From Chlorokybus atmophyticus (lineage: Eukaryota; Plantae; Mesostigma and Chlorokybus algae): a stretch of 64,000 nucleotides of DNA. The position numbers were made by a program, and so were the translations under genes. The stretch lies in contig RHPI01002402.1 in assembly GCA_009103225.1 (NCBI GenBank), positions 777,412-841,411 of the forward strand, in the 5' to 3' direction. The first letter of the stretch is position 1; every line of letters starts with the position of its first letter. Of this stretch, positions 16,860 to 59,393 are shown in pieces. The notes under the pieces were generated by a model. It made no database searches, was not told where the DNA came from, and saw nothing but the letters and a program-made list of their open reading frames with translations.

Positions 16860-18170
16860 GGTGTCATGACAAGACTCATGTGGATTGAATGGCGTTGTGA
16901 CTCATGATCTATGAGCTTACCCCATGCTAGTGGACACCTGAGCATATTGTATATATGTAATAAGCTATGCCACACACACATGCGCAAACATGCTGATGCA
17001 TTTCACACCCAAACCAAGCCAGCCAACAAGCCATAAAGTATACCATTAAATACACTTGCGAGATGGCTAATGCAAAATAAGTGCAAGCAGCAGTTGTATA
17101 TCAATCCGTTTACTACGCAAGTGAGTCCAACATGACCATGATGTACTTGTAATATTGTATTTAAATGTTGTGTGCATTGTACATTAACATGACATCCGTG
17201 GCAAGGGCAAGATTGGTGTTATCATATTAATTATGCAACATGACAAAATTTATAATCATTAGCTACAAGTTTTGTTCATTCCAAGTTGCTATTTACATTG
17301 TGTGTGCAGTGTGCAAATTGTGCACGTTAGATTTTTCATAATACGACAATAGCTTGCATTATGAGCCAATCAGCTTGTTAATTTCAATAACATGGGCCAC
17401 ATGTTAATTGAGCATAAATAACATATGTTGCACGAAGTTGTCGTATGTACAATGCCGCGTTATTGATGCGCAAAATTATAAAAGCGATTAAGACAATGTG
17501 ATGCACAGCATTATCTAATATTTAATTACGTGAAGTCACGAATGTCAACTTTAATGAAAAACAGCTTAAGTTTAACACAATTTGCCGCAGGTATATTATC
17601 ATACACTTGCAACAGCAATAGCATTGGGTTGCTATTTTAAAAACGTATAATAGTGTAAATTGAAAGTTTTGCACATATAGAGCAGTTATTATAAGCATTG
17701 ATTGCACTGGTCGTTAAAGCACACAACAAAGACAATTGCACGCATACAAATTCGATATACAATCAAATTACAGTTTGATGTAATTAAATCAACAACTTGA
17801 CCCAACCTCACAATCATTCGTACAGCGGACAACACCACCTCTTTCACCACCACCATTCATATGCACTGCAAATGCGTATAAACATTTGTTATTGATAGCA
17901 CACTCATCCCCACGCATGATACATGCAGCGGGTTTAAAACATCACATAATTGTTAATATATGAAGAAAATCTTAATATATGTCGACATGCTTGATATTAA
18001 TAGAAACTTTGATGTAACATATCATCATAATTCTGATTGCTTGCCCAAACGTCCAACCATGAGATATCATATATGTGCAGTGACAAATATGTGACTAAGT
18101 CACATGATTACGGCACGGGTACCTGATAGGCCAGTTATGTCATGTTGTTGCACGAGTTTAATTGTAATTG
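16860..18170. other. AT-rich non-coding block, possible decayed non-autonomous element
   Basis: Sharp drop in GC compared with the flanking genes. TCATGA/GACTCATG clusters at the left edge. A 16-mer at 18154-18169 recurs at 29431-29446. Confidence 0.3.
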
Positions 18171-45634: not shown

Positions 45635-46292
45635 GGCCTGCACCACCACGCCGCCGCCGCCGCCGCCACCACGCCGCCAGGTCGGGTAGTTCCACCTCTT
45701 TGTTTTGTGCAAGCGGGGCGTTGTACGCACCGACTTTCACGACTCAGGCTTGTCTGATTTTCGGCAACAGTAGCTCATTGCTCTCTGCCCGACTGTCGGC
45801 TTGTAAACTATCCGCGAGCACACTGTAGCCGGCGGAACGTATCCAGCCGTGGTTTGACACAGAGCGCTTTGGTGTTTTGTTTGTGCACTTGAGATCATAA
45901 TCCCTTTGCTGGACGGCGTTGCTCAAATGTTTCAAAAACATCTGGTCCTGTAGCATCTCACTGCAGCATTGCGGCATGAGAGAAAGCCCTGCACTAAGCT
46001 GTAGCGCGCATGTTGACAGCCACCCCAGAATCCCGATTGCATACATACACACGGCAGCAGTAATTTGCTTGTCAAGCATACATCACATCTATGTTGTCAA
46101 CATGTACATGAAGTACATACTTGATTACCAAGGCAATGAACGAACCACTCTTGCGTCGAGCAAGAACTGAAGGTAACCAAACACATATGACAACACTACA
46201 ACGACACAGCTACAACATCCCTGGCGACATGTGCGAACCCGAGTTCATTGTTAACCCAGTGCACCAACACCATCTGTGCAAAACTGGCTGCA

Positions 46293-46371
46293 TTGCGAAC
46301 TACTGAATAGATCTCAGCCCCACCACACGCACAGGCTTTCGTGGTAGATGCTTCACAGCAGCAGCGCGCAA
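46293..46371 (-). promoter_or_regulatory. Eukaryotic SECIS element, type II, in the 3' UTR
   Basis: Sense RNA: UUGCGCGCUGCUG-CU-GUGA-AGCAUCUACCACG-AAA-GCCUGUGC-G-UGUGGUGGGGCU-GA-G-AUCUAUU-CAGUAGUUCGCAA. Helix I: CUGCUG/CAGUAG plus UUGCG/CGCAA. Core GUGA...GA. Helix II: 12 pairs with one bulged A. AAA lies 13 nt after UGA, followed by a GC/GC mini-stem. Confidence 0.85.
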
Positions 46372-46395
46372 CCCAGCACTTGTCAGACATCGAGC

Positions 46396-47628
46396 CTATC
46401 GCACACGCCTGCTGCGAACTGCTCTCCATTGCGCGAGGACCTTCTTGTGCAAGTCAAGGCTCCAGATGATAGCCACCATTAGCAAGGTGAAACCGGCGTA
46501 TGTGCAGACAATGGTGAACCCGAAGCCGATTGGTGTCAAGCATCCAATGCCATGGCCACAGAAACAAACATGACTGTCTTGATCGCAAGTCCAGCCTTTG
46601 TGGTTGTAACCATCTGGGCTTTGGCATACAGAAGTTCCAGCAGCACCAGCATCCGCAGAACAAGAAGCACCTGGCGAAACTGGCATGCAGCACTGCGCAT
46701 TGTAGTCACTCTTGTACATTGAGGACGACCAGCGGCTGGGCCCGCCTGCCCAGAGCCCTGCATCTTGTAGGACATGCCTACGGCAAAGCATAGACTTGTT
46801 ACAAAAGAACGGAGGATGCATGGATTTTCAAAGTAGTGCACAATAGCGGTAAGCTTGCTTTACCTTGTGAGATCGGCCATGACGAGAGGGATGGCCAATA
46901 GAGTGACATACACAGGGCCGTAGCGCTGCCAGTGGCTGCCTTTACGTTGTGCAGACTTGTGATACAGGTACTGAGCGATGTTAGTGAAGATTGCCAAAGT
47001 GATGCCGAATGTTATAGTGTGCGCAAATGACTTTGACGCTTCCGAAGCTGCAATACCAACCAGGCCTGTGGAAGCAGAGCAACAGAACAAATTGTAGGTG
47101 TGTCAGTGTCCTTGGTTGTGACAGGAGACTGCACTCATTGTGTAGAGCGCACACATGCATGCGCTCGCACACATGCACACGAAGGCATACACATACATGC
47201 ACACGCGCCAACCACACAAACTCAGAGCGTGCATGGAGATTGCCATACCATGTTAGACTAACCTGCAACTAGAAGAGGCCAGCATCAGGAACCCACAAGC
47301 GCAGGTACGGACACTGCCAACGCCAGGATTGCCATGCCAAGAGATGTGCGGTCTTCATCGCTCTGCACGCAACCAGAAATCTACACAACACCTTCATGCA
47401 AGCATTCTGTCATGTGGGGCGTGCAGAGCGGCGTGCACAGGTAATTGTGAGACGTAACATAAGAGCAGGCAAACACGCAACTCCTACCTTGATGTCGGTT
47501 TCAACACCCGCCCTTCCATCATCATTGACGGCCCGGACGGGTGGCCGCACTCATGTGACACATTCTTCCTCTCCCTGTTCCGGATCAACCTCCGATGACG
47601 CTGGAGGAAGCAGCGCCTCGCTACTCAT
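46396..47628 (-). CDS. Candidate membrane selenoprotein (MSP-like), 274 aa, two in-frame UGA codons (U26, U73), about 4 TM segments
   Basis: Exons 47628-47488 (141 nt), 47362-47263 (100), 47065-46864 (202) and 46777-46396 (382) total 825 nt, all GT-AG and in phase. The only internal stops are TGA at 47553-47551 and 47287-47285. A SECIS lies downstream. Core motif HWQRYGPVYVTLLAIPLVMADLTRHVLQD. Confidence 0.8.
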
Positions 47629-48836
47629 CGCGCCCGACAAGCAGCTGCAAGCACAAGGCAAACTCGTCAGCAGCTTACCACACCCAAAATGAGACCAGCC
47701 AGACTGCATGCACGTTAGGCAGGCAGCATCGTGCGGCCGTTTTTGAGCAACAAGTACGCCAAAACTGACTGCTAACCTCGCTGACTCTACTCACAATGCT
47801 CACGTCTCCCACGCCTCTAGCCCAACACAAGCACTCGCCCCCGCCCCCGCCGCCGCCGCTGCTCACGGCCAAACCCCAATAGCCGTCAGGCTACAATCAA
47901 CAGCCATTGATGGCAACAGGTCAAAAAAGCTCAAAAAGCGACAGTACGCATTCAAAAAGAAGGCCTCAATGTCCAGGTGTTTTAGGCCCCAGCCTGCGCA
48001 GGAATACAACTTTAATGAAGTTGAAGACGAAACTTTGTTCACGCACGAGGTTGGCTGATAGACTGCCAGTGACAGTGTGATAATGACCGCGAGCTGCGTG
48101 ACAGGTGAGAACAGGTGATAAGCTCGACCGCCGACGTGGACCTCACCGCGCGCGCGCGCGCGCGTTTCACCGCTACTATGTTGCAATGATTCATTCCCAA
48201 AGCGAAAGTCCCGACACTTTACTAACTTTTCCGTCACTGCTATCCGTCTGCACAAAGTCCGCTGCTCAGCTAAGGGGTCGAAAGTGTCTATCCCGCGATG
48301 TGCTTTTCGTGCTCATCCGTTTCTGGCTGACGCCAGCAGCGGTGAAGTGTTCCTGCTCGGGACGCTGTGTAGGGAGCGGCGGCGGTGGTGGCGGCGGCGG
48401 AAGAGCGCAGGAGCTGTGGGCCGAGGGAGTTTAAGCTCAGGTTCAACCGGAATTTGGTGTGTGGGATTGTTTGTCTGTGGTTGGTGACAAAAAGGAAGCG
48501 AGGGGCTTGTTGGCAAGTGGTTGGTTAGGTGGATCGTCGCATTGAAGGTCGAGCTGGTCGGGAGAAAGGTCATACGCTGCTGTGAATTTTTACGCTTTGG
48601 AGAAGCATAGTGGAGCGAGCGCCTTTGGCTTGGTTGGTACTGGAGCACCGCAACCTGTGTATTGTTGGTAGCTCTGTAGCTTTGGCGCTTCAAGTGCCAA
48701 CAAGGTCCACTGTGTCCTCAGTTGGAGGCGTGCAGCTGCCTTTGTTTCAGCGGAGAGTAGTCAGCTCTGCGCAGTTGGGCATTCCTTGTGAGAATGGGCA
48801 CATGTTGACAGCGGAGGCCTTGCCGCCTCCGCGCGG

Positions 48837-57058: not shown

Positions 57059-59393
57059 ATGGCGGCGATGGAGCAGGTGGCCGCAGCGGCGAGGGTTGGG
57101 AGCAGGAATGCCGCCGTGCTGACGCCCCTGAGGCCACGGCGAGCTGCTGCGCCGGTGCAAGCAGCGGTGCGGAGGGGCGCCCCGGCAGTGGTCGCCGCCG
57201 TCACCGCCACGAAGCCGGCCCCCGGCCGCTCCCTGGTGGACGAGGTGGAGAGGAGAGTCGAGCGCGCAGAAGCAAGCCCGCTTGAGGGCGTGCCGTTCGG
57301 CTACAAAGACTTTGAAGCTGCGCTTAGCAAGTTTGACTTCAAGTTCAAGTCAGGCGACAAGGTGTTCAATTCGTCTGTCCTGTTGGTCTGCGCCAACACC
57401 GAGCTGCCCCCGCCGCAAGATCTGCTGAATTGTCTTCTAACCCGTCAACGTGGCTTGCTTTCTTACAATGTCATGCCGTCGTTGTTAAGCTGAAGTTCAG
57501 TGGAGTCGCGCTCCAGTTTGGTTGGGTAGCACGTCTATCGGCAGGTGTACAGCTATTCTGTCAGCTGGTGCTAGCAGCAAGAGGCGTTGCTAAACTGACA
57601 CATTGAAGCCATTGCACCGTTCATTTGCTGTCCTTCAAGTACCTCTGCACAATCGCACATTGGTTGTTGTGACAACCAGCGCAGCCCGCGCAGGTGTTGC
57701 AGCCTGATAAGACTTAGTTGCACACCAGTAAGCATGGTAATGCTTGTCACAATTGGTAGGCTTCTGCATGGCTGTATCGGTTTTACTCAAGTTCCAAGTT
57801 TAACAGAACACGCATTGCCGCATGCTGCAACCGTCTGCAGAGCATAGTCCGTGGGTGCCTCGCTATTCGAGATGGCCATGCAGGATTGTGCATGACAGTG
57901 CCAACTGTTGATGTCCTCTGTGTGTTCTGCGGTTACATATGTTGACCGAGTGTCTGTTCCGCGCAGGTCAAGGGCACAATATTCAAGGTCGATAACAAAG
58001 GCGCATACGCTGATGTCGGGGCCAAGGCGGCTGCCTTCTGCCCTATTCATGAGTGCTCGATTGTCACCATTGATAAGGTGGAGGAGGCCGTGAGTGTTGG
58101 GGAGACCAGGGAGTTTGAGATTACCAGGGATGATGATCCCGAGGGCGTGCTCACACTCAGCATCCGAAAGTTGGAGTACGAGACCGCATGGCAGCGTGTC
58201 AAGCAGCTGAACGCCGAGGACGTCATGGTGAAGGGAGAGGTGGGTGCAGTTGACACGCACAAGAAAAGCATTGAGCACATGTGAGCCGTAAATGCATGGC
58301 TTGGTTGTGCCTGTAATTATGCTGCTGACTTTATGTGCTAAGTGTTGATGTCCTGCGCTGTAGGTGTTGTCTGTTAACCGTGGCGGTATTCTTGTTATGG
58401 TGGAAGGCCTGCGAGGATTTGTACCCACATCCCACTTGAATGGGGTAAGCAAGATGACCATGTACCAGTTGTGACAGGTTGTGCAACGCAGACTGCTGAC
58501 TCTCTGCTTGCAGCCTCCGCGTGAAGACATGATCGGCCAGGAGCTCACACTCAAGTTCCTGGAGGTGGACGATCAGAGGACACGTATAGTGTTGAGCGCG
58601 CGCAAGGCACAGGCAGAATCGCAACTGAAGCAGTTCCAAGTGAGTGTTGGTGGCTGGTAGGTTGTGCGCAGTAGGAGATGGATGTCTGACATGTGGTTAC
58701 AAAACCTCGCTGTGCTCTGCAGGTGGGTGATGTGGTTCTTGGCAGAGTGCAAGCTGTCAAGCCATACGGCGCGTTTGTGGACATTGGTGGCATCAACGGG
58801 CTGCTGCACATTAGCCAGATCAGTCATGATCGCATCGCAAATGTTGAGAATGTCCTGAGCGAAGGTGACAAGCTTAAGGTAAGGACATCAGAGAGCTTAC
58901 CTCATCCCTGTTGCACCTTGCTGCTTCAGCAGGCTGACTTGACATGTTATGCTGCAGGTCATGATCCTGAGCCATGACAAGGAGAAGGGAAGGATCAGCT
59001 TGACGACCAAGAAGTTGGAGCCAACTCCCGGTGACATGCTGCGCGATCCTGCCCTAGTTTATGCCAAGGTGAGTGCAGTTTCCCTTCTCCACCACCCTGT
59101 GCTGTTGTATGCAAATGCTACGCAACCCGGTGGTGACATGAATTGAGGGCTCACGTCATGCACTTACAGGCCGATGAGATGGCCGCAACCTTCAAGCAGC
59201 GTGTCGCTGCTGCAGCCAAGGCTGCTGATGCTGATGCTATGCGACTGGCTGCTGATGACAGCGTTGTCACTGAAGAGGTGAGTGGTCGGGTTATGGCAGT
59301 GCTAGACGGTTGGGTGCATGTGATTTTATCGCTTAGAGAACCGCTTTGTTGCAGGTCTTGGATGTGGATGACATTCCTGCTGCTGAGACTTGA
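57059..59393 (+). CDS. PRPS1: Plastid 30S ribosomal protein S1
   Basis: Transit peptide, [17 protein letters not shown]|[55 protein letters not shown] and [24 protein letters not shown]; ends PAAET*. Confidence 0.95.

Follow-up and report, generated by a model that had tools for sequence, protein, structure and literature searches.

The window analysed here is a stretch of 64,000 nucleotides (G+C 51%, against a reported 50.3% for Chlorokybus) from contig RHPI01002402.1 of the streptophyte alga Chlorokybus atmophyticus. On its minus strand, at 46396-47628, it carries a gene of four coding exons and 274 codons with two in-frame TGA codons, which is very likely an ortholog of the gene for MSP ('membrane selenoprotein'); the assignment covers both the identity of the product and its anatomy of 274 residues, four hydrophobic helices and two selenocysteines (Sec; U in one-letter sequences). 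GT..AG borders are found at all four exons, which total 825 nt with no frame remainder. The features of the locus, in the direction of transcription, are given below.

47629..47646, minus strand: piece of the 5' untranslated region (UTR) adjoining the start codon, seen in RNA contigs; an upstream 5'UTR intron begins at 47647
47488..47628, minus strand: coding exon 1, codons 1-47, for the acidic soluble tail at the N-terminus, which includes C23-V-T-U26; ATG at 47628, GT donor past 47488; covered by transcripts
47551..47553, minus strand: first in-frame TGA (U26), in the motif E-E-E-C-V-T-U-V-R-P-P
47263..47362, minus strand: coding exon 2 (codons 48-80 and one further base), bounded by an AG acceptor and a GT donor; encodes P-A-L-V-G-S-U-C-W-P within the first half of hydrophobic segment 1
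47282..47287, minus strand: second in-frame TGA (U73, 47285-47287) and the Cys74 codon (47282-47284), together termed the dyad
46864..47065, minus strand: coding exon 3, end of segment 1, a conserved His starting helix 2, a K/R-rich loop and helix 3 ending A-D-L-T-R; placed by splice sites, RNA joints and alignment with relatives
46396..46777, minus strand: coding exon 4, H-V-L-Q-D, a loop with eight Cys, helix 4 (C-L-T..G..F-T...T-Y-x-G-F) and a K/R-rich tail; TAG stop at 46396-46398
46285..46379, minus strand: SECIS-type (selenocysteine insertion sequence) hairpin in the 3'UTR, from its fold, about 40 nt past the TAG stop

The minus-strand reading of 47263-47362 is S-D-E-D-R-T-S-L-G-M-A-I-L-A-L-A-V-S-V-P-A-L-V-G-S-(TGA)-C-W-P-L-L-V-A; exon 2 closes in phase 1 at its GT donor, and exon 3 resumes with G-L-V-G-I-A-A-S. 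U73 thus lies downstream of a polar lead, within a hydrophobic stretch of about 32 residues and in the context G-S-U-C-W-P. Kyte-Doolittle 15-residue means rise to 2.3 in exon 2 and never exceed 0.03 in exon 1, and hydropathy taken exon by exon places four hydrophobic segments in exons 2-4, the first crossing the exon 2/3 junction, and none in exon 1. An earlier sequence-only reading of this stretch had set one Sec midway in a hydrophobic segment beside a Cys and the other in an acidic soluble N-terminal region. Both placements hold, the former by the in-frame translation of exon 2, its hydropathy and the conservation of the segment, the latter by the motif E-E-E-C-V-T-U and the profile of exon 1; the codon numbering (26 and 73) was also correct. 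The segment is not a cleaved signal peptide, being internal and conserved across the family.

The gene model is matched by RNA. Transcript contig sets from two studies, one of them from a run of 2013, contain about 60% of the words in a 1.55-kb stretch, which is the share expected from the exons alone. In each study a single contig matches, from which precisely the three predicted introns are missing; its joints, at 46776/46863, 47064/47262 and 47362/47488, have CT..AC ends on the plus strand. These spliced contigs match the genome with zero base differences, so both TGA codons are present in the mature mRNA. The 3'UTR in the contigs extends past 46200. At the other end the contigs depart from the genome at 47646 and resume with letters found near 47780, and this jump indicates a 5'UTR intron of about 133 nt preceded by a non-coding exon. 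Intron 2 contains, at 47100-47215, a CA/TG-rich imperfect repeat (CACACATGCA-like), which yields weak mir-297 and mir-2060 rows in Rfam, far under the gathering scores, that look like chance.

The 3'UTR hairpin has a core consisting of a 5' G-UGA-A (46352-46356), 11 bp with one bulge, an unpaired AAA, a mini-stem and a 3' U-GA-G (46313-46316), and from its sequence and fold it is probably a SECIS element. SECIS candidates were sought with a simple self-written pattern run over 128 kb (both strands of the window), which gave four matches including the one in the 3'UTR of the gene, where about 0.01 would be expected per 300 nt. Like hairpins were found downstream of the MSP genes at four related loci (L001, L002, L006 and L011), several of them with a G preceding the UGA, a feature that has been noted for the SECIS elements of Ostreococcus (Lobanov et al. 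2007, Genome Biol 8:R198). The gene in the window has a single such hairpin within 396 nt. In the Pterosperma MSP transcript, two near-identical SECIS-type hairpins sharing A-UGA-U, 13 nt, AAG and G-GA-G were observed about 190 nt apart in the 3'UTR (L001:1307-1370 and L001:1499-1562); the pair might provide one element per Sec codon, or might be a duplication introduced by assembly. The other three pattern matches in the window, at 17860 (minus strand), 26884 (minus strand) and 59255 (plus strand), come without the expected hairpin or an upstream frame with an in-frame TGA and are probably due to chance. Upstream of the last (58350-59250, plus strand), one frame reads like an S1-type RNA-binding domain and probably belongs to an exon of a gene for an S1-domain protein.

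MSP was predicted in Ostreococcus, Chlamydomonas, Volvox and Dictyostelium, with two Sec residues stated (Lobanov et al. 2007). In the published alignment P-[AS]-L-V-G-[SA]-U-C-W-P is present in five of five species (supplementary material of that paper), and the family has the further blocks S-H, Y-G-P, A-D..R-H.L-Q-D and C-L-S..G-W.F-T...T-Y.G-F (Lobanov et al. 2007). When aligned, the window protein carries the MSP blocks S-H, Y-G-P, A-D..R-H.L-Q-D and C-L-[ST]..G-W.F-T...T-Y.G-F. As the published alignment shares both the motif and the conserved blocks, the gene was assigned as an MSP ortholog and the motif around U73 recognised as the published hallmark of the family. The Dictyostelium protein has the N-terminal motif C-E-G-G-V-U, and 75Se labelling of Dictyostelium gave a band matching the predicted size of MSP (Lobanov et al. 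2007). MSP has since been listed among the families that occur almost exclusively in Sec form (Jiang et al. 2020, The algal selenoproteomes), and Chlorokybus has been credited with a complete Sec machinery and three selenoproteins (Liang et al. 2019).

Homology searches were run with single exons as queries. An exhaustive HMMER (phmmer) search with exon 4 returned 79 relatives, the best match being a Mesostigma viride protein (E 1.7e-30, 52% identity), with a Pterosperma transcript also at the top; most of the 79 are gene models that begin just past the second TGA. A word-based protein search with the same exon gave no match, the relatives lying outside the length limits of that search. Pfam scans of the exon pieces and of truncated and full-length relatives yielded nothing over threshold, and the rows for TrkH, AmiS and Sdh_cyt, each a single weak match of transmembrane type, were set aside. 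The most recurrent weak Pfam match was DUF1218 (10 of 81 family members, best E 0.0099), which covered the region of the Cys and helix 4 in the two cases viewed. DUF1218 is a land-plant family of four-helix, Cys-containing membrane proteins; the signal could stem from transmembrane composition or point to distant plant relatives that have only Cys.

The DNA of the relatives was read upstream in frame from the truncated gene models (L denotes loci and P database proteins). An in-frame TGA was found at the dyad position in eight relative loci (L001, L002, L005, L006, L007, L008, L009 and L011), so that, together with the published MSP alignment, U73/C74 proves to be conserved in orthologs, as the sequence-only reading had presupposed, and the motif is no product of chance. 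An acidic N-terminal C-x2/4-U with TGA was present in six of these loci (L001, L006, L007, L008, L009 and L011). The motifs at individual loci include the following.

L001 (Pterosperma): N-terminal C-T-D-U; dyad G-A-U-C-W-P
L002: N-terminal motif not seen; dyad G-S-U-C-W-P
L005: N-terminal motif not seen; dyad G-S-U-C-W-P
L008: N-terminal C-Q-E-U; dyad G-V-U-C-W-P
L009: N-terminal C-A-G-G-T-U; dyad G-S-U-C-W-P
L011 (Mamiellales-like): N-terminal C-A-S-U; dyad G-A-U-C-W-P

At L011:~150-470 some 60 codons separate the in-frame C-A-S-U from the A-U-C-W-P downstream. Four database proteins (P0025, P0079, P0080 and P0118, from loci L006, L007 and L010) have W at both Sec positions. Where the codons were checked, at L006 and L007, these W residues proved to be TGA translated as Trp by the gene caller; a TGA presumably also underlies the W at the dyad in the two other proteins of this form. 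Gene calls of MSP from metagenomes and run assemblies show G-x-W-C-W-P together with C-x-x-W, or start past the second TGA, and MSP is systematically mis-called in such collections.

Five natural Cys forms with C-C-W-P were found: P0018, P0045, P0092 (Chlamydomonas sp. UWO 241), P0100 and P0106. The acidic C-x2/4-U is found in every Sec form with a readable N-terminus, and the C-terminal tails of the Sec forms are free of Cys motifs. The N-terminal motif occurs in none of the five Cys forms; in three of them the C-terminus bears an acidic CxxC or CxC, and a tail dyad is absent altogether from P0045 and P0106. These comparisons, although small in number, suggest that a tail pair is needed and may sit on either terminus.

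The arrangement of the protein in the membrane was examined with AlphaFold models of two natural Cys forms, P0018 and P0092 (mean predicted local distance difference test scores of 81 and 82, and 63-76 around the dyad). Both have four long helices, and in both helix 1 stops exactly before S-C-C and is followed by a nine-residue helix, a five-residue loop and helix 2; structural alignments (VIA-align) to up-down four-helix bundles take in helix 1. Across the family the dyad always follows the charged boundary after 17-18 hydrophobic residues, which as a helix would span the bilayer about once, and it is flanked by two prolines. After U-C come an invariant Trp, a Pro, about 14 hydrophobic residues and a short polar link into helix 2. 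K and R abound in the helix 2-3 loop and in the C-terminal tail of every member, and the positive-inside rule would make both regions cytosolic. The helix 3-4 loop varies in length and contains an even number of Cys in 70 of the 79 relatives (eight in the window protein), and N-x-S/T sequons are 3.4-fold denser in it than in the rest of the protein (0.95 versus 0.28 per 100 residues), a pattern that fits a luminal or extracellular loop bearing disulfides.

The favoured model, in which the topology is provisional, has four helices with both tails in the cytosol. Residue counts, the invariant Trp and the DSSP assignment of the models would place the dyad where helix 1 breaks, close to its outer (extracytoplasmic) end and about level with a set of conserved polar residues: the His of helix 2, A-D..R-H..Q-D past helix 3 and the Cys pair that precedes helix 4. 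The charge distribution and the AlphaFold models favour a cytosolic tail site and a U-C close to the opposite end of helix 1, and in this arrangement the tail site and the dyad are probably not side by side.

On this arrangement U73-C74 may be the active site of a thiol/selenol oxidoreductase at the edge of the membrane, with a vicinal selenenylsulfide; this is proposed tentatively and by analogy. The dyad would cycle between the selenol/thiol and the vicinal selenenylsulfide, with the conserved Cys pair of the outer loop as its partner, and the C-x-x-U of the acidic tail would serve as a second, mobile exchange site. Should the tail site be cytosolic, a relay between it and the dyad would need to be transmembrane, in the fashion of DsbD. 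The fuller form of the proposal, a two-site selenium relay in which the acidic C-x-x-U tail exchanges with U-C at the proline-flanked helix break and passes electrons or a thiophilic ion, is more doubtful. Such a relay would connect the cytosol with the His/Asp/Cys cluster opposite, and the tail pair would be essential to it, as C-x-x-U at the N-terminus of Sec forms or as CxxC/CxC at the C-terminus of Cys forms. The sequence-only reading had likewise proposed a two-site redox relay like those of DsbD and VKOR. Its two-site design gains from the tail dyads seen in relatives; the relay itself is a plausible analogy, as no sequence or fold relation to DsbD, VKOR or DsbB was found.

Several results weigh against one or another part of this account. 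The Rfam SECIS models gave no match in a 5-kb region containing the gene, in 271 nt searched with lax filters or at five related loci; these Rfam searches returned only chance miRNA and snoRNA rows. In the literature searched, no function is assigned to MSP. Neither Pfam, a PDB sequence profile, Foldseek (PDB), VIA nor the ESM Atlas (by shape or by features) supplied a match that would support an enzymatic role. The segment containing the dyad might instead form a re-entrant hairpin with the acidic N-terminal tail outside, an arrangement that the net-negative N-terminal flank would fit and even favour; the displacement of the tail pair from the N- to the C-terminus runs counter to it. Finally, the published Chlamydomonas and Ostreococcus MSP models have no tail dyad, whereas the Mamiellales-like contig L011 has one. 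The 2007 Ostreococcus models begin much nearer the membrane segment than does the gene at L011; they may be N-terminally truncated, and the proteins perhaps also have two Sec residues.

It is highly improbable that the two TGA codons are ordinary stops in a pseudogene, a non-coding transcript or a gene with a downstream start. The lack of an Rfam SECIS match would agree with such an explanation, as would the fact that the protein databases, over the length ranges searched, yielded no protein of this genome, but amino-acid conservation continues through both TGA codons in many species, natural relatives carry Cys at the exact position of U73, and the transcript is spliced precisely in frame and has a SECIS-type hairpin. 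The next in-frame Met after U73 lies within helix 3, and a start past U73 would therefore drop two conserved helices. The 75Se-labelled band of MSP size in Dictyostelium argues in the same direction (Lobanov et al. 2007). If the codons are read as Sec, the dyad could instead be a stand-alone peroxidatic or quinone-reactive site embedded in the membrane, in which Sec attacks lipid hydroperoxides or a quinone and Cys74 resolves, the tail C-x-x-U being unrelated and no relay existing. A Sec beside a resolving Cys is minimal selenoperoxidase chemistry, hydrophobic residues and an interface-type Trp border the dyad, and the U-C of the published Chlamydomonas and Ostreococcus models, like the C-C of P0045 and P0106, stands without a tail dyad. 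This explanation is nevertheless rather improbable: a tail Sec is present in ten of ten Sec forms with a readable or published N-terminus, which would be costly if it were irrelevant, and the protein shows no resemblance to GPx, Prx, VKOR or DsbB.

The remaining alternative retains both sites and changes their chemistry. MSP would then be a transporter or receptor for the hand-off of soft metals or metalloids, like MerT, MerC and MerF, and not a redox enzyme: the U-C of helix 1 would hold an ion (Hg, Cu, Cd or a selenium species), which would then reach the chalcogen pair of the cytosolic tail by ligand exchange. The layout matches, MSP having U-C-W-P-L-L in helix 1 and the acidic tail C-x-x-U (or, in Cys forms, the C-terminal CxxC/CxC), while Tn21/R100 MerT has S-T-C-C-L-G-P-L-V in helix 1 and a further Cys pair, MerC combines C-A-A-C-F-P in helix 1 with C-x4-C in the C-terminal tail, and MerE has C-P-C-H-L-P. 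Transport of Hg(II) requires the Cys pair of the first helix (PMC5715351). In MSP the conserved His and Asp near the dyad could act as ligands, and weak MerC matches were obtained from Pfam in 2 of 81 relatives. However, the full-length Cys forms have no MerT or MerC match in Pfam, and homology to these proteins was rejected by hhalign (probability 0.4% for MerT and 2.8% for MerC), the aligned stretches of which miss the dyad. The parallel consists of a short motif and a layout, which convergence or chance can also yield. In addition, most selenoproteins are oxidoreductases, and we know of no transporter that uses Sec. Both the role as such a transporter or receptor and the ligand-exchange route from dyad to tail are thus considered unlikely, and the oxidoreductase proposal is retained as the tentative reading of the dyad.

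The U-C-W-P motif was published in 2007, and its recovery here is a rediscovery. What is new is a well-supported, expressed and correctly spliced MSP ortholog in an early-diverging streptophyte alga, and a family-wide view of the tail pair. The Sec of the N-terminal tail is general among Sec forms and is not specific to Dictyostelium. That Cys forms often bear CxxC or CxC on the opposite tail argues for a tail pair that matters and for both tails being on the same side of the membrane. Land plants have lost all selenoproteins. MSP has been without an assigned function since 2007. In metagenomes, MSP gene calls are cut at UGA or have UGA read as Trp.

Among known systems, the likeness to DsbB and VKOR is one of layout only: four helices with N-in/C-in predicted, a redox-type pair at the outer end and a Cys pair in a large outer loop. 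MSP differs in having a vicinal U-C instead of CxxC, an extra tail dyad and no known quinone site. Pfam gave no VKOR or DsbB match for the full-length relatives or the 81 family members, Foldseek against the PDB returned nothing usable (E at least 1.5), and VIA-align found generic helical bundles with a best Z of 8.5, under the helical noise quoted for the tool, with VKOR and DsbB absent from the top 50. With DsbD and CcdA, MSP shares a membrane-embedded chalcogen beside a proline and, possibly, the transfer of reducing power across the membrane; those proteins have at least six helices, two of them related by symmetry and each contributing one Cys, whereas MSP has four helices and a vicinal pair in one, and Pfam gave no DsbD match for exon pieces, for full-length relatives or for any of the 81 family members. 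A parallel for the Mer proteins lies in helix 1, where a vicinal or near-vicinal pair precedes a Pro, and in the second pair on a cytosolic loop or tail; MerT, MerC, MerE and MerF are bacterial, contain only Cys, have 2-4 helices and are connected unlike MSP.

The G-C-U-G of thioredoxin reductase forms a selenenylsulfide ring and acts as a flexible C-terminal redox shuttle. Like it, MSP has adjacent Cys and Sec able to form an eight-membered selenenylsulfide ring, and a flexible tail that could act as a redox shuttle; unlike it, MSP has the order reversed (U-C) and the site internal and hydrophobic rather than at a soluble C-terminus, and the flavoprotein domain was not found. SELENOK, SELENOS and SELENOI are also membrane-anchored Sec proteins, but have Sec in a soluble C-terminal tail; to our knowledge, MSP is the only selenoprotein with Sec within a hydrophobic segment. 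The nearest comparison is with published MSP itself. The window protein has the same P-A-L-V-G-S-U-C-W-P in its first hydrophobic segment, two Sec residues like the Dictyostelium protein, and a SECIS-type hairpin in the 3'UTR. It differs from published MSP in its N-terminal motif, which is C-x-x-U where Dictyostelium has C-x4-U, and in a longer helix 3-4 loop with eight Cys, as in Mesostigma and Pterosperma, where the published short-loop proteins have two.

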